Shown in pieces: positions 36,451 to 64,000 of a DNA stretch of 64,000 nucleotides. A program made the translations under genes and the position numbers. The stretch's first letter is position 1, and the number at the start of each line of letters is the position of its first letter. Origin of the DNA: Heteronotia binoei (lineage: Eukaryota); the NCBI RefSeq assembly GCF_032191835.1, contig NC_083227.1:26908001-26972000 (forward strand), given 5' to 3'. Under the pieces are notes generated by a model. It made no database searches. It was not told the DNA's origin and was given only the letters and a program-made list of their open reading frames with translations.

Positions 36451-37679
36451 GATTTTTCTTCCGTTTGGAGCCTGGCTTTAACCTGCAATTGGGTTTATCG
36501 GTCCTCTCTGTTTTGTCCCTTTGCCCATGCAATCTTACGCGCTGACATTGGACTCACCCTGCGATGCAGGATTGTCTTAATGGGTGGTGCCCGGGAGACT
36601 GAGCCTTCCCTACAGGGCTTTAGTTCAGGGGTAGCCAAACTGCGGCTCGGGAGCCACATGTGGCTCTTTCACACATATTGTGTGGCTCGCAAAGCCCCCA
36701 CCGCCCTGTCAGCTAGCCTGGAGAAGGCATTGCTCTATATAAATCACTTCTCTGAGCCAAACCAGCCAAAGTCTTGGAGAATGCATTCAAAGTTGCTTTC
36801 TTTTCACCTCTCCCTCCCTCCCCATCCATTTGCTATCCTTCCTTCGTCTTGTGGGTCTCAGTTCATGTCATGCGGCTCTCAAATATCTGATGTTTATTCT
36901 ATGTGGCTTTTATGTTAAGCAAGTTTGGCCACCTCTAGTTCAAATGTCGGTTCTGCAGCCCACATGCACTTTGTAGGATAGTAATTTTAACATTGCTTTT
37001 AAAAAAATCCCCCCAAAATTATTTCTCTGAACTAATTATAAGCAAGCTGCTCTCAGCAGAACAAAAATTTGAGCCCAGTGGCACCTTTAAGACCAACAAA
37101 ATTTAATTCTGGGAATAAACTTTCATGTGCACGCACACTTCTTCAGAATTAAACTATGTTGGTCTTGTCCTTTGGTCTTGTCCAGAGGTTGTCCTTGAAA
37201 GGGCAGCTGCTGTGAGAGTCCTCTCAGCCCCACGCACCTCACAGGACAACTCTTGCCAGAGCAATGGCTGACCCAAGCCATTCCAGCAACTGCAAATGGG
37301 GGAGTGGGGAATCAAACCCGGTTCTCCCAGATAAGAGCCCACACACTTAACCACTACACCAAACTGGCTCTTTTAAAGGTGCCACTGGACTAAAATTTTG
37401 TTATATTGTCTCCTGGTCTGTCATTTCAAAAAAGGGGCACAGCACAATGTCCAGGTTGGTCAATCTAGAATAGATTCCTAGTAACATACCTTTTATTAGA
37501 ACACCCCCTGCCCCCTCAAATAGTAGTATGCTTTGTTGTTTTAGAAATATGTAATTTTTTTATTTGATGTGACCTGCCCTGAACCCATTTATGCAGGGCA
37601 GTATAGAAATGTGAGTAAATACACACATGCATGCATACATACATACATACTGCACATTGGCTCTGAATATCCCATCAGT

Positions 37680-47859: not shown

Positions 47860-48250
47860 CGCGCATAATTTTTATAAACCTCACTGCCTGTAGTGGTTTG
47901 ACTTGCAGAAACCCACAGGAAACTGTCTTATAGTGGCCAGACGGACCCTTGGTCTGGCACAGTCTCTGGCAGGGAACTCCCTGAAGCCTTCTTTAAAAAC
48001 CAGCAATATCCAAGATTGAACCTGGAACTTTCTGTGAATAATGCATCCCAAAAGCCTCTCTTTCCCTGGCCCCATAGTTCCGTGCCCAAATGCTCTTTTT
48101 CCTGCCAACTCACCTTTTCCAGCTGCCGGTTTCCCCGCTTTCCTTTTGGCTGTCTATTGTTAAATGGCGGCGCAGAGCCCGAAAGCGGTTCCGCGGCTGC
48201 CACCTACTGGCAGCTCAAGAGAAAAGCAAAAAGCTCCCGGCCAAAAATAC
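47860..48250 (-). promoter_or_regulatory. CpG island / probable first exon of gene C with a YY1-like motif
   Basis: CpG cluster; AAATGGCGGC at 48162-48171; perfect donor AG|GTGAGT at 48113. Confidence 0.65.
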
Positions 48251-48289: not shown

Positions 48290-51200
48290 AACATTTGCCT
48301 CAGAGCTGACTTCCACCAGTCTCTTGCTTCAAAGCCTGCCTGCCTTCCACCCCAATCCCTTGCCTCAGAGTCTGACTTCCACCCCAATCCCTTGCCTCAG
48401 AGTCTGACTTCCACCCCAATCCCTTGCCTCAGAGTCTGACTTCCACCCTAATCCCTTGCCTCAGAGCTGACTCCTGCCAGTCTCTTGCCTCGAAGCCTGC
48501 CTTCCACCCCAATCCCTTGCCTCAGAGTCTGACTTCCACCCCAATCCCTTGCCTCAGAGTCTGACTTCCACCCCAATCCCTTGCCTCAGAGTCTGACTTC
48601 CACCCCAATCCCTTGCCTCAGAGTCTGACTTCCACCCTAATCCCTTGCCTCAGAGCTGACTCCTGCCAGTCTCTTGCCTCGAAGCCTGCCTTCCACCCCA
48701 ATCCCTTGCCTCAGAGTCTGACTTCCACCCCAATCCCTTGCCTCAGAGTCTGACTTCCACCCCAATCCCTTGCCTCAGAGTCTGACTTCCACCCCAATCC
48801 CTTGCCTCAGAGTCTGACTTCCACCCTAATCCCTTGCCTCAGAGCTGACTCCTGCCAGTCTCTTGCCTCGAAGCCTGCCTTCCACCCCAATCCCTTGCCT
48901 CAGAGTCTGACTTCCACCCCAATCCCTTGCCTCAGAGTCTGACTTCCACCCCAATCCCTTGCCTCAGAGTCTGACTTCCACCCTAATCCCTTGCCTCAGA
49001 GCTGACTCCTGCCAGTCTCTTGCCTCGAAGCCTGCCTTCCACCCCAATCCCTTGCCTCAGAGTCTGACTTCCACCCCAATCCCTTGCCTCAGAGTCTGAC
49101 TTCCACCCTAATCCCTTGCCTCAGAGCTGACTCCTGCCAGTCTCTTGCCTCAAAGCCTGCCTTCCACCCCAATCCCTTGCCTCAGAGTCTGACTTCCACC
49201 CTAATCCCTTGCCTCAGAGCTGACTCCTGCCAGTCTCTTGCCTCAAAGCCTGCCTTCCACCCCAATCCCTTGCCTCAGAGTCTGACTTCCACCCTAATCC
49301 CTTGCCTCAGAGCTGACTCCTGCCAGTCTCTTGCCTCAAAGCCTGCCTTCCACCCCAATCCCTTGCCTCAGAGTCTGACTTCCACCCTAATCCCTTGCCT
49401 CAGAGCTGACTCCTGCCAGTCTCTTGCCTCAAAGCCTGCCTTCCACCCCAATCTCTTGCCTCAGAGTCTGACTTCCACCCTAATCCCTTGCCTCAGAGCT
49501 GACTCCTGCCAGTCTCTTGCCTCAAAGCCTGACTTCCACCCCAATCTCTTGCCTCAGAGTCTGACTTCCACCCTAATCCCTTGCCTCAGAGCTGACTCCT
49601 GCCAGTCTCTTGCCTCAAAGCCTGCCTTCCACCCCAATCCCTTGCCTCAGAGTCTGACTTCCACCCTAATCCCTTGCCTCAGAGCTGACTCCTGCCAGTC
49701 TCTTGCCTCAAAGCCTGCCTTCCACCCCAATCCCTTGCCTCAGAGTCTGACTTCCACCCTAATCCCTTGCCTCAGAGCTGACTCCTGCCAGTCTCTTGCC
49801 TCAAAGCCTGCCTTCCACCCCAATCCCTTGCCTCAGAGTCTGACTTCCACCCTAATCCCTTGCCTCAGAGCTGACTCCTGCCAGTCTCTTGCCTCAAAGC
49901 CTGCCTTCCACCCCAATCCCTTGCCTCAGAGTCTGACTTCCACCCTAATCCCTTGCCTCAGAGCTGACTCCTGCCAGTCTCTTGCCTCAAAGCCTGCCTT
50001 CCACCCCAATCCCTTGCCTCAGAGTCTGACTTCCACCCTAATCCCTTGCCTCAGAGCTGACTCCTGCCAGTCTCTTGCCTCAAAGCCTGCCTTCCACCCC
50101 AATCTCTTGCCTCAGAGTCTGACTTCCACCCTAATCCCTTGCCTCAGAGCTGACTCCTGCCAGTCTCTTGCCTCAAAGCCTGACTTCCACCCCAATCTCT
50201 TGCCTCAGAGTCTGACTTCCACCCTAATCCCTTGCCTCAGAGCTGACTCCTGCCAGTCTCTTGCCTCAAAGCCTGCCTTCCACCCCAATCCCTTGCCTCA
50301 GAGTCTGACTTCCACCCTAATCCCTTGCCTCAGAGCTGACTCCTGCCAGTCTCTTGCCTCAAAGCCTGCCTTCCACCCCAATCCCTTGCCTCAGAGTCTG
50401 ACTTCCACCCTAATCCCTTGCCTCAGAGCTGACTCCTGCCAGTCTCTTGCCTCAAAGCCTGCCTTCCACCCCAATCCCTTGCCTCAGAGTCTGACTTCCA
50501 CCCTAATCCCTTGCCTCAGAGCTGACTCCTGCCAGTCTCTTGCCTCAAAGCCTGACTTCCACCCCAATCTCTTGCCTCAGAGTCTGACTTCCACCCTAAT
50601 CCCTTGCCTCAGAGCTGACTCCTGCCAGTCTCTTGCCTCAAAGCCTGACTTCCACCCCAATCTCTTGCCTCAGAGTCTGACTTCCACCCTAATCCCTTGC
50701 CTCAGAGCTGACTCCTGCCAGTCTCTTGCCTCAAAGCCTGCCTTCCACCCCAATCCCTTGCCTCAGAGTCTGACTTCCACCCTAATCCCTTGCCTCAGAG
50801 CTGACTCCTGCCAGTCTCTTGCCTCAAAGCCTGCCTTCCACCCCAATCCCTTGCCTCAGAGTCTGACTTCCACCCTAATCCCTTGCCTCAGAGCTGACTC
50901 CTGCCAGTCTCTTGCCTCAAAGCCTGCCTTCCACCCCAATCCCTTGCCTCAGAGTCTGACTTCCACCCTAATCCCTTGCCTCAGAGCTGACTCCTGCCAG
51001 TCTCTTGCCTCAAAGCCTGACTTCCACCCCAATCTCTTGCCTCAGAGTCTGACTTCCACCCTAATCCCTTGCCTCAGAGCTGACTCCTGCCAGTCTCTTG
51101 CCTCAAAGCCTGCCTTCCACCCCAATCCCTTGCCTCAGAGTCTGACTTCCACCCTAATCCCTTGCCTCAGAGCTGACTCCTGCCAGTCTCTTGCCTCAAA

Positions 51201-52610
51201 GCCTGCCTTCCACCCCAATCCCTTGCCTCAGAGTCTGACTTCCACCCTAATCCCTTGCCTCAGAGCTGACTCCTGCCAGTCTCTTGCCTCAAAGCCTGCC
51301 TTCCACCCCAATCCCTTGCCTCAGAGTCTGACTTCCACCCTAATCCCTTGCCTCAGAGCTGACTCCTGCCAGTCTCTTGCCTCAAAGCCTGCCTTCCACC
51401 CCAATCCCTTGCCTCAGAGTCTGACTTCCACCCTAATCCCTTGCCTCAGAGCTGACTCCTGCCAGTCTCTTGCCTCAAAGCCTGCCTTCCACCCCAATCC
51501 CTTGCCTCAGAGTCTGACTTCCACCCTAATCCCTTGCCTCAGAGCTGACTCCTGCCAGTCTCTTGCCTCAAAGCCTGCCTTCCACCCCAATCCCTTGCCT
51601 CAGAGTCTGACTTCCACCCTAATCCCTTGCCTCAGAGCTGACTCCTGCCAGTCTCTTGCCTCAAAGCCTGCCTTCCACCCCAATCTCTTGCCTCAGAGTC
51701 TGACTTCCACCCTAATCCCTTGCCTCAGAGCTGACTCCTGCCAGTCTCTTGCCTCAAAGCCTGACTTCCACCCCAATCTCTTGCCTCAGAGTCTGACTTC
51801 CACCCTAATCCCTTGCCTCAGAGCTGACTCCTGCCAGTCTCTTGCCTCAAAGCCTGACTTCCACCCCAATCCCTTGCCTCAGAGTCTGACTTCCACCCTA
51901 ATCCCTTGCCTCAGAGCTGACTCCTGCCAGTCTCTTGCCTCAAAGCCTGACTTCCACCCCAATCCCTTGCCTCAGAGTCTGACTTCCACCCTAATCCCTT
52001 GCCTCAGAGCTGACTCCTGCCAGTCTCTTGCCTCAAAGCCTGACTTCCACCCCAATCCCTTGCCTCAGAGTCTGACTTCCACCCTAATCCCTTGCCTCAG
52101 AGCTGACTCCTGCCAGTCTCTTGCCTCAAAGCCTGACTTCCACCCCAATCCCTTGCCTCAGAGTCTGACTTCCACCCTAATCCCTTGCCTCAGAGCTGAC
52201 TCCTGCCAGTCTCTTGCCTCAAAGCCTGACTTCCACCCCAATCCCTTGCCTCAGAGTCTGACTTCCACCCTAATCCCTTGCCTCAGAGTCTGACTTCCAC
52301 CCTAATCCCTTGCCTCAGAGCTGACTCCTGCCAGTCTCTTGCCTCAAAGCCTGACTTCCACCCCAATCCCTTGCCTCAGAGTCTGACTTCCACCCTAATC
52401 CCTTGCCTCAGAGCTGACTCCTGCCAGTCTCTTGCCTCAAAGCCTGACTTCCACCCCAATCCCTTGCCTCAGAGTCTGACTTCCACCCCAGTCCAGACTT
52501 CTATCCCAATCCCTTGCCTCAAGAACCCAACTTCTGCCTCAGAGCTGGCTCCCACCATAGTCTCTTGCCTCAAAGCCTAACTTCTACCCCAACCCCTTGC
52601 CTTAGAGCGG
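48290..52610. repeat. tandem array: 93-bp higher-order unit (32+29+32 bp related monomers), ~35 homogeneous copies plus a monomer-rich left portion
   Basis: the 31-aa periodicity of ORF 49084-52293 equals 93 bp; shared core CTTGCCTC..AG in every subunit. Confidence 0.95.
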
Positions 52611-52711: not shown

Positions 52712-52978
52712 GTATGGTGGTTAAGTGTACGGACTCTTATCTGGGAGAACCAGGTTTAATTCCCCACTCCACCACTTGCAGCTGCTGGAATGGCCTTGGG
52801 TCAGCCATAGCTCTCACAGAGGTTGTCCTTGAAAGGGCAGCTTCTGGGAGAGCTCTCTCAGCCCACCCACTTCACAGGGTGTCTGTTGTGGGGGAGGAAG
52901 ATAAAGGAGATTGTGAGCCACTCTGAGATTCGGAGTTGGGGGAAGGATAAAAATCTAATGTGTTATTATTATTCCTAC
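52712..52978 (+). mobile_element. Squam3-like SINE
   Basis: consensus head and tail. Confidence 0.8.
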
Positions 52979-52984
52979 TACTAT

Positions 52985-53498
52985 ATTGTCACTTTGTGAC
53001 CAACACTGAAGTTCTCAAGCGGGCGGAGGTTACCAGCATCGAGGCACTGCTGCTGAAGATGCAGCTGCGCTGGGCAGGGCATATTTCTAGGATGGAAAAC
53101 CACCGCCTTCCCAAGATTGCCCTGTATGGCGAACTCTCCACCGGCCATCGAAATAGAGGGGCACCAAAGAAGAGGTACAAGGACTCCTTGAAGAAATCCC
53201 TTGGCACCTGTCGCATCAACCATCACCAGTGGTCTGACCTAGCCTCAGATCGCAAAGCATGGAGGCACACCATCCACCAAGCTGTCTCTTCTTTTGAGAA
53301 CGCACGCATAGCTGGTCTTGAGGACAAAAGGAGATTGAGGAAGAATCGCACTGCTACAGCACCAACCCTGAATCAGACTTTTCCCTGCAGCCACTGTGGC
53401 CGGACCTGCCTGTCCCACATTGGTCTTGTCAGCCACCAGCGAGCCTGCAGCAGACGTGGACTATTGCACCCTTCTTAAATCTTCGTTCGCGAAGCCAA
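52985..53498 (+). mobile_element. RTE-clade LINE 3' end (with C-terminal C2H2/CCHC-like motif)
   Basis: QLRWAGHISRM..RLPKIALYGEL..G.R.RG.PKKRYKD.LK and CSHCGRTCLSHIGLVSHQRAC; tail GAAGCCAA runs into Ns. Confidence 0.85.
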
Positions 53499-53829
53499 NN
53501 NNNNNNNNNNNNNNNNNNNNNNNNNNNNNNNNNNNNNNNNNNNNNNNNNNNNNNNNNNNNNNNNNNNNNNNNNNNNNNNNNNNNNNNNNNNNNNNNNNNN
53601 NNNNNNNNNNNNNNNNNNNNNNNNNNNNNNNNNNNAAGCAGGCTGATGGGAGTATGGTATCTCAATGCAATGACTATACTTTATTAACTATATCTGCACC
53701 AAGTACATTTTATTAACAATAAGGCACATCAACTGGATACAAACATTAGAATTAAACACAACATTGACACTGATGTCAGCAAGAGAAAAGGGGCACCCTG
53801 AATTCTGGATATTTTCCTTTGCCTCTGCG

Positions 53830-54410
53830 TGCCCCTTTGGGCATTACACAGAGCCAGTGATAGGTGAATGATTGCTTACATACATCACATTTATATGTCT
53901 TCTCATCTACCAGCTACTTCATGGTGTGGATTCTCTCATGGACTACAGAACTGTGACTTCCAGTTGAAGCTCTTCCTGCAGTACAAGCACTTGTGGAGTT
54001 TCAGATTGGCATGAGACCTTCCATGCAGATTAAGATGGCTGTTCTGCCTGAAGCCAATCCCACCGTAACATCTGCACTAATTCCATCTGGTGTGTGTGTG
54101 GGGGGGTTCTCTTGCGTGCAACCCACTGTCAACTCTGGCTGAGGGCTTTTGAGCAGTGGGATCATTAATTGGGCTTCTCCCCATGTAGACGGCAAGCTGA
54201 GACCTCTCAATGGTCTTTCCACAGAAAGAACATTCACACAGGCCACTCTCTGGTAGGACTCACTGGTAGCTTGCAAGGGGATCATTGCATCGAAGGCCTT
54301 TCTTGACAAAAAATAAAAGTTCTGTCACATAAAAGGTGGCTCCACGGACTCCAGCTTTACATTTGGCTTCTGCTGCTGTGGGGTTTCATTGACAGCCTTC
54401 TCACTTGCTG
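53830..54410 (-). pseudogene. decayed C2H2 zinc-finger exon of paralog D
   Basis: remnants ECSFCGKTIERSQLAV, HKCLYCRKSFNWKSQ..VVHERIHT and YKCDVCKQSF, broken by frameshifts and stops. Confidence 0.75.
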
Positions 54411-55023
54411 GACAAAAAATGGACGTACCTGTTCATTTCCTACAGTGGCCTTTTTGCCTTCTCTTGGGTTGGTGCTGGTTCAGGGATTCTAGGACCCGCA
54501 TGCGGTGCCTAAGTCAATGCCTGCTGTTAAGTCAGCTGTTCGCCATCAACACAATCCGTTGGGAGGCAGCCTTGAGCCAGGGGTTGTGGAAGGGGGGGAT
54601 GAGTCACAATGAAGATGCCAGGGAGAGCGCAATTTCCCAAAAGATTCGTTCATATCTCACAGGAGTTCCAAAGGGGTGGAGTCACCAAAGGGGTGGGTCT
54701 CAGGATGGGCCAGGTTCTCCCTAAGCAAAAGAAAACTGGCCAAGGAGGATATGCCTGCTCTTACGCCTCAGGTTCAAAGGAACAAGAGAAGGCAAAACTC
54801 CTTGGCCTTAGTCTGAAAAAAGCCCCTTCTGAGGGTCATGGCCCCTGCTGACAAGATCTGCCAGACTCAGGTACATCTTACATCTTAGTATTCAGCTGTT
54901 CCGCAACCCAGGAAAAGACTTCTTGCTTGGTATTTGGGGGCATGCTTTGGGACAATTCCACTCGCAACGGACTTTCTCAGGGACTCTTTCTTTTCACCAT
55001 CATTCCTTTGGCCGGAACCTACA

Positions 55024-55250
55024 TAAGAACATAAGAGAAGCCATGTTGGATCAGGTCAATCCAGTCCAACACTGTGTCACACAGTGGCCAAAAAAATCAG
55101 GTGCCATCAGGAGGTCCACCAGCAGGCCAAGAACTCCAGAAATCCTCCCACTGTTGACCCCCAAGAATACAAAACATTGCTGCCCCTAACAGAGTGTTCC
55201 TATATGTTGTGGCTAATAGTCACTGAGGGACCTCTGCTTCATATGCTTAT
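55024..55250 (-). mobile_element. CR1 3' tail fragment
   Basis: ATAAGAACATAAGAGAAGCC consensus. Confidence 0.75.
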
Positions 55251-57004
55251 GTTTGGTATTTTGAAAACAGGCATGACCAACCACAAAATGGCTGCCATGG
55301 GGCCAATCAGAAAACACTGGGTAGCTCCAACCTCAATGTTCTTTGGTATGGCGAAGAAAGCCATTGGCACCAAGGAACACCATATCGGGTATCATTGGCT
55401 AAGAGGATGAGAGTGAACACAAACACCACCCAAATGGGTAGGGTTGCCCAATCCAATTCAAGAAATATCTGGGGACTTTGGAGGTGGAGCCAGGAGCAAG
55501 GTTGTGACACGCATGACTGAACTCCAAAGGGAGTTCTGGCCATCACATTTAAAGGGACAGCACACCTTTTAAATGCCTTCCCTTCATTGGAAATAATGAA
55601 AAATAGGGGCACCTTCTTTGGGGGCTCATAGAATTGGACCCCCTGGTCCAATCCCTTTGAAACTTGGAGGGTACTTTGAGGAGAGGCACTGGATGCTATG
55701 CTGCAAATTTGGTGCCTATAACTCAAAAAACAGGCCCTCCCAAGCCCCAAATACCAGCAGAACAATTCTTCATTATACCCTATGGCAGGGTTTCCCAAAC
55801 TTTTATTTCCTGTGGCCCGCTTATTTTTACACTTCTCCTTCATGACCCACTAAAATTTGGGGGTACATCCAGGAGACTTTGGGGGTGGAGCTGGGAGACA
55901 GGAATTATGCCATTTCCTGTGGTGTCAAGGGTCAAGTGATGTCACTTCTGGGGCACACTGAACCAAAAAGCCACCTTTTCCTGTGATGTCACTTCCAGAA
56001 TGTCCACAAGTGGAGCCAGGGGACTAGAAGCCCTCCCACTGTTGCTTCCCCCCCTCCCAGCACCAAGAATACAGACAGAGCATCACTTGCAGGGAAAGAA
56101 AGAGGGGGGGGGGGGAAGCCTTCCTCGCCATCAGATGACGTCAGCCAGCAATAATTCTGCCATGGGGTCGTTCGGTTAAAAAAAAAAAATACTGGAATGC
56201 CCACTCCCCGCTGAAAAAAACACACACACCCTTCTTTGCCGCCCAGGCCTCCCGGAGGAATCTCCCCAAAAGAACATACTGAAAGGCACAGGAAAGCTCA
56301 TACCCTGAAGAACACTTCATGGATCTAAAGTGCCAGTGCATGCCAGCTTTACTCTCAAACATTGGGAGGGGAGGAGAAGAAAAGAGAGGCAGCCCAGCTC
56401 CTCTCTGCACAACACAGAGACGGGGGAAGGAAGAAAGCCAGAGCTCAGGCTTTGCAGCCTGTGTCAGTCTTCAAGGCTAGCTTTTCTCTGCACAACAGAG
56501 AGATGGGGGAAGGAAGGAAACAGAGCAAAGGTCATGCTTTGCTGGGGACGGAGCTAGCTTGGCTGGGGACAGGGCTAGCTTTGGCTTTTCTTGTGACCTG
56601 GTAGTGAGGCTTCTGTGGTCCGGTGCCAGGTCACGACCCTGCAAATGGGAAACATTGCCCTATAGGTATCGGTCTTCATAGGGAATAATGGAGTGCCCAG
56701 CAGACATTCTCCCCCCCCCCTGCTTTCTGATGATCCTGAAGCAGGGGGAGGGCCTCCAAACCGGGGAATCCCCTGCCCCCACCTGGGGATTGGCAACCCT
56801 ACAACTGGGGGCCATTTTTAAGGCTGCCAAGATGCTATTGTGGCCAATGTGAAAAGAATCCAAGTCCTTTCTCTTCTGCCTTGTTCCCCAACCAGGCCCT
56901 CCCTCAAACAAAACTGAAACACCAAGAGCAGGGAGAGATCAACCCTTAAGTGCCAAGACCAATTTGCCCTCATCCACTGCATCCTTTTTGCTATCCCTTC
57001 TTAC

Positions 57005-57720
57005 CTATGAAGGAAAACCTCAGCCAGGATCACTGCCTGGGCACAAGTTTCGGGGCTGCGTTCCCTGATCCTCTTCTGGCTGTCAAAGGCAGGATGCTCA
57101 ACAGCTGCTCAAGGAACAGCAGCTCCAAGATTTGGGCTTTCAAACATTTCTCCACCCTCAGTCATTGATGACAAAGTTTCTTGAACTGGCTGTAAGTCTT
57201 TCGTGGCTGCTCGGCCTGCTGGTAGCAGAAACACTAGAAGTGTTGACGCCGCTTCTCTGTCCTCATGGTGTCTTGTCATAAGATGGCCGCCTTCAACTTC
57301 CTGTAGCTCTCCTTGTCTCTGGCCTCCAGCTTGTCAAAGGCAGCTGGGTTTCTCCTCTTGAGGGCCAAAAGGAGTCCAGTCACCCACTCCTCTCTGGGCC
57401 ACTGACAGGCTTTGGCCACTTGCTCGAAGGCCAGAAAGGCCTTGGCATAATCCCACAGAGCAGGCCCCCCTGGCAGCTGTGAGGCACCCCAACCTAACTG
57501 AGGGGACTCCAGTTTCTTCAGGATCTCCTGCCACTGGGTTTTCTAAGTCTAGTACAATTCCACCCTTGACCTCTCATTACTACAGGAATTCCCTGATATT
57601 CCCGGCTTCAACAATGGACACCATGTCTCCTAGTTTGTGTCTGAAGGATTCAAGCACCTGTGTATGTATCTCTCTGTACCAAAGACTGCCCCCATCCCAT
57701 TTCGCAAAAATGTCAATGAA
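57005..57720 (-). pseudogene. extended-SCAN pseudo-exon of paralog D
   Basis: [52 protein letters not shown], with stops at 57276-78, 57234-36 and 57162-64 and a frameshift. Confidence 0.9.
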
Positions 57721-57819
57721 GATGTCCCACTTTAGGAATCATCAGGAAGAACTTATGTTTCAAGAAGTCTCAGATAGTATTGAGCAAAAGCCAAATCCAC
57801 TGGCAAGGTTAACATAAAA

Positions 57820-58270
57820 CAGCATAAGCTTTGAGTTCTCCAGAATTCTTCTACAGAGGCCAGATGCCTGGAACATCCTACATGGCATGAAACGTATTCG
57901 AAAGGGACTGCAAGCTTTCAAGTCCTCCAGAACTTTCCGGCAAGCTGGATGCTTGTTATTAATATTGTTTAATTAAAAAAGCATTTTAGAAGGACAGGAA
58001 TGGAAGCTTTTGAGTCCTCCAGAACTTTTCGGCAGGCTAGATGCCAAAGGGAGAGGAAGTTTAATAGCAAGCATCCAAGCCTGCCAAAATGCTCTGGAGG
58101 AAAGCTTGCAGTCCCGTCCTTCTGAGAGGATTCAGGTCTTCTAAGATGTTTCCAGTCATGTAAGAGGTTTCAGGTTTCCTTCCAAAAGGGGGAGGAGGTT
58201 CAATAACAAGCATCGAGCCTGCCGTAATGTTCCAGAGGACTCAAAAGTTTGCATTCCCTTCCTTCTGAGA
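57820..58270. repeat. foldback-like array: three direct and two inverted degenerate ~60-85-bp units
   Basis: AAGCTTT..GAGTCCTCCAGAAC...GGCAGGCT.GATGC at ~57826, 57912 and 58004; reverse complements at ~58060 and 58200. Confidence 0.75.
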
Positions 58271-58860
58271 TGGAGAACTTTATACCACAATATTTTTAAA
58301 ATATATAAATCTTTATGAACATTTCAATGCAAAACTCAACTGCAAGAGAGCCAGAAGGCACCCCACAAGAGACAAAAGGAAGTCAAACTAATCCAGGGAC
58401 AAGAGATCACAGCAAGCATAGGCCCCCAAATCCAAACATACACTTTCGACACACACAGACACTTCACTCACTCACTCTCTCTCACAAGCACACCATTTCC
58501 CTGCGTCCTAAGAAAAATGAGAAGGAAGAGGGTTTTAAACACACAAGCTCTCCTTTCTCTTGGCAAGCTGAGGCCTATACCATCACTGGCTCAGAAGAGC
58601 CTCAACAGCTTCAGTTGCCCTTTATCTCTGGAACTTCTGGAAGTTGTAGGATTGAAGATCCAGTAACAGAACTTTACCCCATTTCCTTCCCTCAAGAAAG
58701 AAGGACCCAAGAATCAGAAGGGCCACACAACTACTGTACTAATCTAAAACAGAAGGGCGAAAGGAAAGAGACAGAGAGAGAAGGGGGTAGCCTTTCGTCC
58801 CAATCCTGAGAGATTGAACGAGGGCAGCCACAAAGAAGCCTCCATACAAGCCCACACACA

Positions 58861-61053
58861 TCACTCGCTCTCAAAGGCCAGTTCCGGATAGTTCAAGAAC
58901 GGCAAGTTGACCTTCAAGAAGGCCAACTCCTCCAGATTTAAAGGGTATATGTCTGAAATGGTAACCTCGTCTGAACAGGCCAGTTTGCTCTGAACCCTGG
59001 CGGCAGGGCAGGAGAGGAGTTCCTGGGCCACGAGAGACAGGCCAGGCCACACAGCCTCCTTTTGGGCCCAATAGCTCAAGGGGTCAGCATCAGGGGACTC
59101 GCAGGGCTCCACGAGGTACTCAATCACCATTGCCTCTGCCCAGTCCTCCTTCCCCTGCCTCTCACTCCCGCTAACAGTTCCCCTGACTACACTCCGCACA
59201 AGTTCCGCCTCAGGAGCAGCGAGGCAGGATAAGTGGCTGGCAGAAGGGTATGGGAGGAGAGCGCCCTCCTCCATTCTTGCTGGTGTGACCATGCCCCTCT
59301 TGGCTTGAAAGTCCCTCACACGTTGAGCGAGCTCATCTCTCCAGGGGTGCAGAGCATTGTCACGCAGGGCAATGGCGCCCTTGACCCGGGGGTCACACAG
59401 GGTGGCCAGCATGTAGATCAGCTTCTGAGCGAGAGGCTGCAGATGCGCTTCAATCCCCCTTTGCAGCCTCCGCACTAGGGTTTCCACCGGTGGGTGGAGC
59501 TGAGAGCCGTCCTGACCTTGGTTGGAAAACGCAGCCAAGTCCTCCTGAAGCTTCTGGATCAGGGGAACGACCAGACCCAGGCTAGCCGTGGGGCGGCTGA
59601 GCATCTCCGTGAAGTCCTTAAAGAGCTTCAAGACAAGCAGCGTCTGGGAGAGTGTCTGCCACTCCCTGCAGGAAAGCGGTCTCTTTCCCGGCACGAGGTC
59701 GACCACTTCGGCAACTCGGCGCACGGCGTTCTTCTGCTCCAGAAGGCGCTCGATCATAGCGTAGACGGTCGTCCAGCAGGTGGCCACGTCGTCAATCAGG
59801 GGGTCATCCGGCACATCGGACTCTTCCTGCTTCTCCCCCAGCAGCCTCCTGGCTTCAATGCTGCTGCTGAAGTGAGCCCCGATTCTCCGGCATTCCTCCA
59901 GCAGGCACCACAGTTCACAGCCCGCGGCATCCCAGCCCGCCGGCCTGGAGGAACCCAAACCGAGTGCATCGTTCGCCACAAGGTCAAGGAGGTGTGTAGT
60001 GCACAGAATGCGCGTTAAGGACAAGTCACTCACTGCTGCCAAAACTTCGGCACCACCATCCGTTACCATAAAACCTCTGGCAACACCTTGGCCCACCCAA
60101 GCCTCTATCTGCTGCTTGACAACACCGGACAGGTCAGACACCGAATCCGCCGGACCCAAAACCTGGGCATGAAGCAAAGCCCGATGGTAACCCGCCTTGT
60201 AGCCGGTCTCCTCCTTCCTAAAGCTGCTCTGCCCCCCACCCACAGCATCCTCCATTTGCCACCAGTGTGCAGTCAATAACAGGTAGGTATACTCTGTCTG
60301 GGAGCAGGTCCAGATGTCTGAGGTGAAGTGCACAGTCCGCCCCTGGGCCTGGGACAACTGTGACTTCACAAGCTCCTTGATGGACTGATAAAGGGAGCGC
60401 AGGATGGTGCTACACAGCTTCTCGCAAGAAGGGAGCTCATACCAGGGAATGAAAAGCTGGAGCAACCCTTGGAAACCAGCGTTCTCGACAATGTTCACTG
60501 GAAAATCATCCACAGCAATCATCTCACAGATTAGGCGAGTGAACTTTTGAGAATCAGAATGGGACAAGCTGGCAGGAACTGATGACAGGGGGACAACGGA
60601 CTGAGAGGACAACCTGTGCGCCGTCTTTTCCCGCCCTGTGTCCGAAGAGCAGCTGGGCTGCCCATGACCTGGAGAAGTGAGGCCTACACCCAGCTCATGA
60701 AATGCCCTCAGGAAGACTGCCTCACTCCACTGAGTCTTTGCCACAGAGGTCTCCCCAGAAGACAGTTCTTGCTGCCGTTCCAAAGTCAAACTCGCAGCTA
60801 CCAGCGCCTTCCCTGCATTGCCTGTCTCAGAAGGTTGACGTTTAGGAGGCAGAACAGCAGTCTCTTGGGAAACAGTCTTACAAGGCTGCTTGTTGGTGGT
60901 ACCCCAACAGGGGGATGGGCAGCTGCTGAGGTTTGGGTGCTCTTGAGGCCTACCAATGGCCTGAGGGGTAGCCAGAGCACTTCTGTTATCTTCACCCAGA
61001 TTACTCTTGCGCTTCGCCTTACCCCAAAAGCCCCTCCCTCTAGCCTCACTCAT
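58861..61053 (-). CDS. hAT-transposase-derived protein (ZBED4/ZBED6/Ac-type core), 730 aa, probably domesticated and catalytically inactive
   Basis: TSDIWT (D1), VTDGG (D2), CTTH (CxxH), DVATCW, LATLCDPR, DPLSYW...LSCPA dimerisation domain; SER motif replaced by SKL; real ATG with an in-frame stop just upstream; no internal stops. Confidence 0.88.
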   Translation of the reverse strand: MSEARGRGFWGKAKRKSNLGEDNRSALATPQAIGRPQEHPNLSSCPSPCWGTTNKQPCKTVSQETAVLPPKRQPSETGNAGKALVAASLTLERQQELSSGETSVAKTQWSEAVFLRAFHELGVGLTSPGHGQPSCSSDTGREKTAHRLSSQSVVPLSSVPASLSHSDSQKFTRLICEMIAVDDFPVNIVENAGFQGLLQLFIPWYELPSCEKLCSTILRSLYQSIKELVKSQLSQAQGRTVHFTSDIWTCSQTEYTYLLLTAHWWQMEDAVGGGQSSFRKEETGYKAGYHRALLHAQVLGPADSVSDLSGVVKQQIEAWVGQGVARGFMVTDGGAEVLAAVSDLSLTRILCTTHLLDLVANDALGLGSSRPAGWDAAGCELWCLLEECRRIGAHFSSSIEARRLLGEKQEESDVPDDPLIDDVATCWTTVYAMIERLLEQKNAVRRVAEVVDLVPGKRPLSCREWQTLSQTLLVLKLFKDFTEMLSRPTASLGLVVPLIQKLQEDLAAFSNQGQDGSQLHPPVETLVRRLQRGIEAHLQPLAQKLIYMLATLCDPRVKGAIALRDNALHPWRDELAQRVRDFQAKRGMVTPARMEEGALLPYPSASHLSCLAAPEAELVRSVVRGTVSGSERQGKEDWAEAMVIEYLVEPCESPDADPLSYWAQKEAVWPGLSLVAQELLSCPAARVQSKLACSDEVTISDIYPLNLEELAFLKVNLPFLNYPELAFESE

Positions 61054-61899
61054 CCTTCACTACCCCTTCCTAAAACTAGGCCAAGCCCTCTCAAAGACAC
61101 ACACACACCCCTTCACAAGGATATACTACGCAAACGCACCCCAGCACGCACAAACAACCAGTCACCCACAGAATGTGAATGCACAACACAAATGGCTGTA
61201 AAAATCTGAAAACAAACAAAAGGAACAGGTTAAAAAACAGCAGCCTCCCCAATTTTTAGAAAAAGTCTGTCACAAAACAAAGCTAAAAGCAACCCCCTCC
61301 AAACAAATAAACTCAAATCAGGAAATTAAAAAAATAAAATTAAAAATCCAGACCCACCAACAGTCAGCAAACAAACCAACAGTAAAACAAACAGTCGACA
61401 AAATCTAAGAACAGGTTTCCCCTACCCTGCCTACACCCTATTCCAGAAAATATAAGGGGATTCCTCCCTAACTAAACTCTCCAGGGAAATAGCTCAAGTC
61501 TTTCCCAGCAGGTTTCCCCAGGCAGCTCTCTGGGAAACAGTTGTGCTTCAACCCAGTCTGCTTATATTTTCCTCCCAGAGTCCTCTCAGAGTTTCTTCAT
61601 GGCCATGGATTGTCCTCCAAAGAGATGGTCTTTCAATGCACTGGACTAAAACTGGACACTTTTTGACAAAAAAGGCGATCAGGCAGTCAAGAACATGAGA
61701 GGATCGTTCCTGGAAGAGAAGGAGGACAAGCTACATAAGGATAATGCATGCACAAAAAGATTTGTCTCAAAATCTACACATCCCTCTTGCATCACATGAC
61801 CCAAACGGCCCAGAATGCTTTTCTGCACAACATAACTCCCATTATCCCTTCAACCCCACCACAAGAACCCAGACTAGGGCATTAGGAGGCAACTAAACA

Positions 61900-62185
61900 G
61901 CCCCGTGGTGCAGTGTTAAAACTGCAGTACTGCAGTCCTAAGCTCTGCTCATGACCTGAGTTCGATCCCCGGCGGAAGCTGGATTTTCAGGTAGCCAGCT
62001 CGAGTTTGACTCAGCCTTCCATCTTTCCAAGGTTGGTAAAATGAGTACCCAGCTTGCTGGGGGGAAAGCGTAGATGACTGGGGAAGGCAATGGCAAAACC
62101 CTCCCCCGTAAAACGTCTGCAGTGAAAATGTTGTGAAAGCACCCCAGAATCGAAAACGACTGGGGCTTGCACAGGGGACCTTTCC
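61900..62185 (+). mobile_element. Sauria SINE
   Basis: GTGGTGCAGTGTTAAAACTGCAGTACTGCAGTCC head and consensus body. Confidence 0.85.
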
Positions 62186-62269
62186 TTCCTTCCAAACAGC
62201 CCTCAGAGCCAGCCTCTCTGGTGGATCTCACCACAGCTCTGTCTCCTGATAACATAGAGGTTAGAAATC

Positions 62270-62370
62270 TGAAGCAGACTTCGGAAGATGGTGGAAGACA
62301 GGAGGGCCTGAGGGTGACTTTGTTCATGGGTCACAAAGAGTTGGACTCGACTGTGTGAATGAACAACAAA
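62270..62370 (+). mobile_element. Bov-B/RTE 3' tail
   Basis: GGGTCACAAAGAGTTGGACTCGACT...AACAACAA. Confidence 0.65.
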
Positions 62371-62511
62371 ATAAGATCTTTGCGTGGTATCTAAAGAAGT
62401 GTGCATGCACAAGAAAGCTTATACCCGCCCAGAGTTAAACTTTGTTGGTCTTAAAGGAGCCTCTGGACTCAAACTTTTGTTCTATTGCTTGGGGCCAACA
62501 CACACAAAAGG

Positions 62512-62793
62512 GTAAAGGTAGTCCCCTGTGTAAGCACCAGTCGTTTTTGACTCTGGGGTGACGTTGTTTTCACAACATTTTCACGGCAGACTTTTTACGG
62601 GGTGGTTTGCCATTGCCTTCCCCAGTCATCTACACTTTCCCCCCCAAGCAAGCTCAGGGGGACCTCGGAAGGATGGAAGGCTGAGTCAACCTGGAGCCAG
62701 CTACCTGAACCTAGCTTCCGCTGGGATCGAACTCAAGTCGTGAGCAGAGGGCTCCGACTGCAGTACTGCAGCTTTACCACTCTGCGCCACCGC
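62512..62793 (-). mobile_element. Sauria SINE, inverted relative to 61900-62185
   Basis: reverse-complement consensus. Confidence 0.85.
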
Positions 62794-62799
62794 CCAATT

Positions 62800-63480
62800 A
62801 ATCTGATGGTTGTTCGAGTCCTCAATAAATGCGGATTGTTATGCTGCAGGCTGGGGCGTGCGTATTTGTGAATGCAACTGCACATCCTTCGCCCTGCGCC
62901 TTCTGAAAGCTGCACCACTTGCCCTGGCCCAAAGGCGCACCAACGCATCCCGCCGCCTTGCAATCCCGCCCCCTTCTTCCCTTACCCACGGCGGTTTACC
63001 CTTGCAAAAGTTTTCCCCACTGGAAGTTGCAGCCCGGGCCCGGGAAGGGAGATCGCAAAACAAACAAAAGGCGGCCTTCCAAAAGGAAAAGCCGCTCGCA
63101 GGTTTCTAGGAATCAAATGCAAAACTTCAGAATTGCACTTTTGGGACGGTTGCCCGGAGACTGGCGACTGACTGGCCTTGGGTTGCCTCGTTTATAACCC
63201 CTTCGCTCTCCTGTCCCGATTCACTGCTTGCTTAGGGTAGTTGGGTGCAGAGCCTGCAAGCAAAGCCTCTCTATCCCAGATCCACAGTACTCAGCCTAGG
63301 TGGCCTACCTTTTCTGGCGGCGTTTGGCGACTCCGAGCAGAGGCGCAGCTCCTTCCACCGAGACCTGGTTCTAGGGAACCACGTGGCCTGTTCGCGGGCC
63401 TTAAGTATAAACCAGCACCACGCCCCCCTCCCGGCTTTGAATACCCTCCTGGGCGGGGCTGCAGTCGCCTGTCCTTCCTA
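62800..63480 (-). promoter_or_regulatory. CpG island / probable first exon for the transposase-derived gene (and ancestrally paralog D)
   Basis: CpG-rich with GGGGCGGG boxes; donors GG|GTAAGG at 62985 and AG|GTAGGC at 63308; candidate acceptor ttttacAG near 61197. Confidence 0.6.
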
Positions 63481-63599
63481 GGCAGGGGTCATTCCATAGA
63501 AATAGAGGTGCCGGAGCTCATTAGCACACTTCATTTGCATAGCTCCTTGGCATATGCAGCACACCCCGGACATCCCCAAAAAGTGAACTAAATTATATC

Positions 63600-64000
63600 A
63601 GATAGATCCAAGCAGGCAGGCGTGTTGGTCTGAAGTAGTAGAACAAAATAGGAGTCGATTGCACCTTTAAGACCAAATTAGTTTTGTTGAGAACGTCAGC
63701 TTTTGTGCGCCCTCTAAGCACGCTTCATCAGACGAGGGATCCGGCACAGTGAGCAGGGCCATACATAACTGGAGGCAGTGGCCCAGAATGCAACATAGTG
63801 CAATGACAGTGAAGTAAAATTATCTGGTAAAATGGTACAAATATAAGATTTAATGACAGAATAGCAAAATTAACAAATTGAGCAAACCTTTGATCTGAGT
63901 AGCATGAGCATGTGAAAGCAACGAAACAGCAGTATGTCAAATTGTGAGAGTATCTGTCAGTGACTCTATTGCTATGGTCCTGGGCCAAAAGGAAGGAATA
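63600..64000. mobile_element. Penelope-like element end with a degenerate hammerhead (63693-63734, minus), running off the window
   Basis: same terminal sequence as 3655 and 19688; CGT-CTGATGA-A-stem-AAAA-GCTG-ACG. Confidence 0.55.

Follow-up and report, generated by a model that had tools for sequence, protein, structure and literature searches.

A hAT-derived open reading frame beside a dead SCAN zinc-finger paralogue in Heteronotia binoei, and the possible inheritance of that paralogue's promoter

How does a transposase-derived reading frame come to stand open beside the exons of a dead zinc-finger gene, and whose promoter would it use? The question is raised by a stretch of 64,000 nucleotides (nt) from Heteronotia binoei (assembly GCF_032191835.1, contig NC_083227.1, positions 26,908,001 to 26,972,000 of the forward strand), here called the window, which holds a tandem array of SCAN-C2H2 zinc-finger (ZNF) genes with every unit on the minus strand. 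Searches by tblastn with the SCAN and ZNF open reading frames (ORFs) of genes A, B, and C found a fourth unit, paralogue D, and an ORF derived from a hAT transposase lies on the same strand just upstream of the dead D exons (Table 1). The evidence is good that this ORF is one more immobilised hAT gene with a dead active site inside a zinc-finger cluster, and to this extent it belongs to a known class without being unusual in it. For the locus as a whole, the explanation that is tentatively preferred, at a probability somewhat short of even, is that an old immobilised copy of the 'ZBED4-like' family survives as a single-coding-exon gene, driven from a CpG-rich island and using a promoter inherited from D. 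Transcription would most probably start in this island, 1.75-2.4 kb upstream of the ORF, and a short non-coding first exon (donor 63309 or 62986) would be spliced to an acceptor at 61205, giving a leader free of upstream ATGs and a translation start at 61053. Both the transcription from the island and the splice are what we infer from the nucleotide sequence.

The sole Pfam match of the hAT ORF is Dimer_Tnp_hAT (E 8e-07), and a profile built from the ORF and three relatives matches the Hermes transposase (E 1e-17). An AlphaFold model made with the family alignment has a mean predicted local distance difference test score (pLDDT) of 75.6; the core residues 160-730 are mostly above 87, while residues 1-157 are predicted to be disordered. 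The top Foldseek matches of this model are all Hermes structures (4d1q_A, E 4.5e-15, template modelling score 0.67 by target). As modelled, the product has a Hermes-like fold of the hAT superfamily, with an RNase H-like core that has an inserted helical domain, and a C-terminal dimerisation region.

The active Hermes enzyme needs its DDE triad, D180, D248, and E572. In alignments with the Hermes profile and with 31 family sequences, the hAT ORF has kept D246, D332, C351/H354 (CxxH), and W427, and the position of the catalytic Glu is a Lys (SKLACS; family consensus SERVFS) beside a short deletion. No zf-BED match was found in Pfam, the BED segment of the relatives P0001-P0003 is absent from the alignment, and tblastn found no out-of-frame BED remnant. 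Because the third catalytic residue and the BED finger are lost, the predicted product would be unable to cut DNA; if functional, it would most likely act by protein contacts, for example by pairing with BED- or SCAN-bearing relatives. A scan of the flanks for transposon ends found no pair with at least 10 of 14 inverted matches and an 8-bp duplication (at most one mismatch), nor was a convincing inverted repeat found flanking the ORF, which argues against a recent insertion. One candidate end pair, at 58121/61590, was rejected because it lies inside an unrelated palindromic repeat. By its sequence, the hAT copy is old and immobilised.

The preliminary description of the locus set the multiple stops in the D exons against the open transposase frame, and this contrast holds. 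The SCAN relic of D has four lesions in 566 nt, namely a frameshift near 57085 and three stops in frame, and the ZNF exon of D is broken, while all 730 codons of the hAT ORF are open. The other five frames of the same 2193 nt have 12-38 stops each. At the lesion density of the D SCAN relic, simple arithmetic gives about 15 lesions expected in the ORF, and none is present. Even the first ~165 codons, which are poorly conserved, are open, as are only 0.1% of shuffles of this part; the other frames there have 2-12 stops. The ratio of observed to expected CpG (CpG o/e) is 0.26 for the whole window, 0.36-0.64 for the live exons of genes A-C, and 0.18-0.29 for introns and spacers. By this scale the core of the hAT ORF is exon-like (0.52) and its N-terminal part is near background (0.28). 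The ORF retains 78% of the positions conserved in its family. Relative to P0001, nonsynonymous divergence (dN) is 0.54 and synonymous divergence (dS) is 1.27, the latter being near saturation and giving no date or branch-specific ratio. From these sequence comparisons it is concluded that selection probably kept the frame for most of its history, with a constraint that has been relaxed or altered; there may have been a recent loss of constraint.

Paralogue D is long dead; its exons have the CpG o/e of background (0.20 in the SCAN relic and 0.18 in the ZNF relic) and multiple lesions. A SCAN pseudo-exon had been placed at 57.7k; the relic is there, with its clear part at 57542-56977, and a DNA alignment suggests that it extends, as a weaker and more decayed similarity to the 5' part of the SCAN exon of A and B, up to ~57.6-57.7k. 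Beyond the ZNF relic there is an assembly gap (53499-53635; the window has four such runs of N) and then a fragment of a long interspersed nuclear element (LINE). The LINE ORF fragment abuts the gap (52960-53478, plus strand, 172 amino acids) and has a C-terminal zinc-knuckle-like motif (CSHCGRTC...H). In the spacer that separates the hAT ORF from the SCAN relic, the nested palindromic repeats resemble a miniature inverted-repeat transposable element, with arms that are 83-100% complementary. The only poly(A)-signal variants in this interval are two ATTAAA sequences inside the palindromic repeat, at 58065 and 57973 on the minus strand; by these two signals, termination of transcripts before D is possible.

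The preliminary description also reported a CpG island above the hAT ORF with a donor at 62985, and both are confirmed: GT is present at 62985 and the island has a CpG o/e of 0.68. A simple splice-site scan gives the island two minus-strand donors, at which the exon would end on 63309 or 62986 (GT at 63308 and 62985; scores of 8.4 and 7.6), and no plus-strand donor scoring at least 6 in 62700-63995. Before the first donor, the minus strand has a GC box (63456), a TATA-like TTTATA (63411), and an E-box (63385). Minus-strand GC skew in the island is mildly positive (+0.10), as it is in the first-exon regions of B and C. The island has retained its CpGs although D is dead, so it is probably still used by something. 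Strong minus-strand acceptors have AG at 61711-61710 (exon from 61709) and at 61207-61206 (exon from 61205). The second is the acceptor previously placed near 61197; a strong site does exist there, about 10 nt from that position. The candidate intron between donor 62986 and this acceptor contains two short interspersed nuclear element (SINE) copies, at 61912-62179 and 62521-62781, that face opposite ways, together with further repeats that match many places in the window (62292-62501). A further donor (tttggg/GTAAGG, score 8.2) lies on the minus strand at 61023-61022, 31 nt inside the hAT ORF, and may be due to chance.

The distribution of ATGs on the minus strand bears on the proposed splice. 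With 958 minus-strand ATGs in the window, there are only four minus-strand runs of at least 500 nt without one: one in a satellite, one at 1242-605, one at 61599-61054 (546 nt), and one at 63491-62949 (543 nt). The third of these ends exactly at the hAT start codon and the fourth covers the island and both donors. Compared with expectations from dinucleotide-preserving shuffles, the run before the start codon has no minus-strand ATG against 6.7 expected and three plus-strand ATGs against 2.5, and the run over the island has none against 3.3 on the minus strand and one against 2.6 on the plus strand. When the limits are set by the splice sites, the leader from acceptor to start codon (61054-61205) has no minus-strand ATG against 2.7 expected (P 0.025), with three ATGs on the plus strand, and with limits set in the same way the depletion in 62986-63420 has P 0.04. 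Joining exon 1 to 61205 gives a leader without an upstream ATG, and use of the other acceptor, at 61709, would bring in three. The sequence that parts these runs from each other (61600-62948) holds upstream ATGs and the two SINEs, so it would need to be spliced out for a scanning ribosome, and intron retention would be a poor route to the protein. Avoidance of ATG on the minus strand only is suggestive of a non-coding first exon joined to the leader, and is not proof of one.

Promoter inheritance is favored by the layout of the array. A CpG island 3-4 kb above the SCAN exon had been proposed as the shared plan of genes B and C, and the CpG cores do lie at about that distance: in gene B at 36003-36625 (o/e 0.72), ~3 kb above the SCAN exon, and in gene C as a small island at ~48.0-48.3k with a donor near 48113, ~3.8 kb above. 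In D the distance from the island to the SCAN exon is 5.2 kb; the hAT ORF takes up 2.2 kb of it and later repeats take up ~0.7 kb. The interval from the hAT stop to the D SCAN exon is only 1.1-1.3 kb, with a CpG o/e of 0.22, and is thus too short for a promoter and a first intron of 3-4 kb like those of B and C. The island is at the place the array predicts for the first exon of D, and inheritance of the promoter from D is therefore the most economical reading.

Several observations weigh against the preferred explanation. A search for RNA sequencing runs over 58600-61250 gave none. When the island was compared with the sequence above A, B, and C by sensitive blastn and by Smith-Waterman alignment, no similarity was found, except for one marginal match between D and C just after the donors, a score reached by 4 of 300 shuffles; the island thus does not resemble the first-exon regions of B and C, and as those two are also unlike each other the comparison is uninformative. 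Gene A differs from B, C, and D in that the 11 kb upstream of its SCAN exon (13927-25300) hold no CpG-rich candidate for a first exon, and so no island. CpG-rich sequence or a first exon is also present ~2 kb upstream in two relatives that have no SCAN host, P0001 and P0007. Donors of comparable quality occur about 1.1 times per kb on either strand, and the sites alone are within chance. The ATG-free runs were noticed post hoc, and with limits fixed by landmarks their P values are only those given above, 0.025 and 0.04. The window stops at 64000, and the island may serve a plus-strand gene beyond that point. Retention of conserved positions in the hAT ORF is the lowest among close relatives (others 81-97%), and its end branch in the family tree (0.91) is the longest among them, as would also be expected of a gene whose constraint is weakening. 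In the protein collections searched, no relative exceeded 46% identity, so there is no ortholog to document long-term conservation at the locus.

Part of this evidence would be expected if the hAT gene and D were independent neighbours, the hAT copy having reached the spacer above D by insertion or duplication, or having come to lie beside a D that was already dead or had been truncated from the start. The island would then be the hAT gene's own host-derived promoter or that of another unit, no promoter would have been taken, and D would not have been killed by the insertion. The island has no detectable paralogy with the first exons of B or C, and gene A shows that units of the cluster can be without an island. 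The CpG-rich zone of P0001 lies 2-3 kb above its ATG in a histone cluster, where there is no SCAN relic, and P0007 has its first coding exon ~2 kb upstream; an upstream exon followed by an intron of ~2 kb may thus be usual for the family whatever the host. The spacing argues in the other direction, since only 1.1-1.3 kb is available from the hAT stop to the SCAN exon of D for what takes 3-4 kb in B and C. There is also no second island or island relic in this interval (the o/e of 0.22 given above), though a dead promoter would have decayed, and a transposon does not bring along a CpG island 2 kb upstream of itself. Independent origin is a credible account, less likely than not and a little less likely than the preferred reading.

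Some of the evidence is what a silent relic would show: an ORF that lesions have missed by chance or that lost its constraint recently, with an island that serves a gene past the window end, perhaps a plus-strand or bidirectional one. The loss of the BED finger and the catalytic Glu, the longest end branch and lowest conservation among close relatives, the near-background CpG of the N-terminal third, the empty outcome of the search for RNA runs, and the failure of protein searches to find an ortholog are all in keeping with this. It does not account well for the absence of the ~15 lesions expected at the density of D, for the open frame of the poorly conserved N-terminal ~165 codons (P ~0.001), or for a core with exon-like CpG and a confidently predicted fold. 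The avoidance of ATG before the start codon on the minus strand only and the lack of a plus-strand donor in the island are also against it, and a silent ORF is considered improbable.

With a surviving hAT gene under the former promoter of D as the preferred reading, a stronger version can be stated, in which the non-coding first intron of D received the hAT copy, and this copy was spliced to exon 1 of D, took its promoter, and was selected while the coding exons of D decayed, without a fusion stage; the promoter of a host gene would then drive a transposon-derived protein and nothing else. We infer the island's former ownership by D, and any causal link between the insertion and the death of D, from the arrangement of the sequence, and replacement in this full form is rather unlikely, if far from negligible.

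The protein relatives of the hAT ORF were sought by two word searches with the ORF, one search seeded with P0001, and an exhaustive search of 1.84 billion representatives. The nearest protein relatives are squamate. The exact product of the ORF is not on record, and neither P0003 nor P0004 is on record as a gene. The closest protein is P0001 from Eublepharis macularius (45-46% identity), a stand-alone single-exon 'ZBED4-like' gene in a histone cluster without a nearby SCAN relic. Its locus is not syntenic with the window and has no non-coding similarity to it. P0001 has a 950-nt ATG-free leader (L001 9050-10001) in addition to its upstream CpG-rich zone. Of 31 'ZBED4-like' hAT proteins from amphibians and reptiles, almost all have a catalytic-triad lesion of their own (for example D to N, K, Y, or E; E to K; or a deletion) in a frame that is open. 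These separate lesions point to many independent immobilised copies.

In a maximum-likelihood tree, the window ORF and P0001 are sisters (Shimodaira-Hasegawa-like approximate likelihood ratio test, 95), and the pair is sister to SCAN-BED-hAT fusions from Eublepharis (P0004) and Pogona (P0006) (99). The SCAN fusion of Anolis sagrei is in another clade than those of Eublepharis and Pogona, so SCAN would have been captured at least twice in the family. The order in Pogona vitticeps (L002 10309-21110) is a SCAN exon, a small exon, a BED-hAT exon, and a weak ZNF relic. This tree and this order would be consistent with the window ORF being the last exon of such a fusion gene, as in Pogona, Eublepharis, and Anolis sagrei, with its SCAN exon beyond 64000. 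Between acceptor and ATG, however, there are four stops in the ORF frame, the last of them lying two codons ahead of the ATG; the N-terminal motif MSxxRG...GKxK is shared with the stand-alone P0001; and a SCAN exon further upstream would be cut off from the ORF by the island with its two donors. A last exon of this kind is very improbable. The preliminary description allowed for a transient SCAN or KRAB fusion at the locus itself, and this was rejected: in addition to the stops upstream of the ATG and the N-terminus like that of unfused P0001, the SCAN exon of D lies downstream of the ORF stop, and no KRAB domain was detected when the large ORFs of genes A-C were scanned against Pfam.

The coordinates of the features discussed are given in Table 1. 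An Rfam search over 53000-64000 gave no match. Between the first exon of gene C and the zinc-finger relic of D there is a satellite (48340-52481) with a 93-bp unit in 44 copies at 96% identity and a strong G/C strand bias, which creates a spurious ORF of 1069 amino acids at 49084-52293.

Table 1. Features of the window (positions count from its first letter; UTR, untranslated region)
Feature	Position	Strand	Basis or remark
Gene A	SCAN ORF 13927-13088; ZNF ORF 9497-8673	-	ORF list and Pfam scan
Gene B	SCAN ORF 33128-32313; ZNF ORF 26490-25300	-	ORF list and Pfam scan
Gene C	SCAN ORF 44280-43741; ZNF ORF 40309-39428	-	ORF list and Pfam scan
C2H2 ZNF pseudo-exon of D	53809-54301	-	tblastn, 28-57% identity; several stops and frame changes
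SCAN pseudo-exon of D	56977-57542	-	tblastn, 54-56% identity to SCAN of A and B
Nested palindromic repeats, ~90 nt	57864-58272		Presumed 3' UTR or spacer between hAT stop and SCAN relic
hAT-derived ORF, 730 codons, intact	58861-61053	-	Reptile/amphibian 'ZBED4-like' family
Candidate leader, acceptor to start codon	61054-61205	-	No ATG; four stops in the ORF frame
Candidate 5' UTR intron (donor 62986 to acceptor 61205)	61206-62985	-	Predicted splice sites
CpG-rich island, candidate promoter and non-coding first exon	62790-63520	-	GC 0.57, CpG o/e 0.68

The locus can be compared with several known systems. In placental mammals, ZBED6 is a hAT-derived ORF without introns that lies within intron 1 of ZC3H11A and is expressed from a common promoter upstream of ZC3H11A exon 1; there is one site of RNA polymerase II and cap analysis of gene expression (CAGE) signal upstream of that exon, and ZBED6 is single-copy and immobile (PMC2780926). 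The window ORF is likewise an immobile, putatively domesticated hAT in one intronless frame, and it would share the first-intron position, the same strand, and the use of a host promoter if the reading preferred here is correct. The succession of island, ORF, SCAN relic, and ZNF relic on one strand fits such an arrangement. ZC3H11A is alive and co-expressed through an intron-retaining transcript, whereas D, the presumed host in the window, is dead and a splice would be required. ZBED6 also has two highly conserved BED fingers and binds DNA, whereas the window ORF has no BED finger.

Host-transposase fusions arise by alternative splicing, and in older ones the host transcript is generally no longer detected and the transposase-containing transcript is the sole product; SCAN is among the host domains (Cosby et al., 10.1101/2020.05.07.082677). 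The locus would resemble these fusions in having a transposase ORF within a host transcription unit, with an acceptor close to the 5' end of the ORF, a candidate site here, that links it to host exons lying upstream. They are protein fusions, however, and the window ORF could join only a non-coding exon and would retain no host protein. Such fusions also favor the DNA-binding domain of the transposase, which the window ORF does not have.

The SCAN-BED-hAT genes of squamates, named 'ZBED4-like' or 'ZBED6-like' (P0006/P0154 in Pogona vitticeps, P0004 in Eublepharis macularius, and P0003 in Anolis sagrei), belong to the same hAT family, with 35-42% identity to the window ORF. They too are found in or near SCAN-ZNF genes and some have catalytic-site lesions of their own, but in them the SCAN domain precedes the hAT part and BED is retained, while the window ORF is upstream of a SCAN relic, unfused, and without BED. 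P0001 is similar to the window ORF in its single coding exon, N-terminal motif, long ATG-free leader, and own catalytic lesions (the second Asp changed to Asn and the Glu region deleted); it differs in keeping the BED finger and in its histone cluster setting without a SCAN relic. The dS between the two points to old paralogy or separate insertions, not to clear orthology. A protein with the core and dimerisation region but neither DNA-binding finger nor active site could be used to explore what domesticated hAT proteins may do without catalysis or DNA binding, such as partnering or antagonising the squamate SCAN-BED-hAT proteins.

If replacement did occur, it would be a route of domestication in which a transposase lands in a 5' UTR intron, gains a permanent host promoter, and outlives the host gene, and it would complement both the KRAB/SCAN-transposase fusion route and the ZBED6 route of co-expression. 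The preliminary description did not know of such a layout. For the sharing of an intron-1 promoter this does not stand, since ZBED6 and ZC3H11A are a precedent; promoter sharing without protein fusion together with complete loss of the host would be a new combination, and in that respect the locus would be a new variant among these systems.

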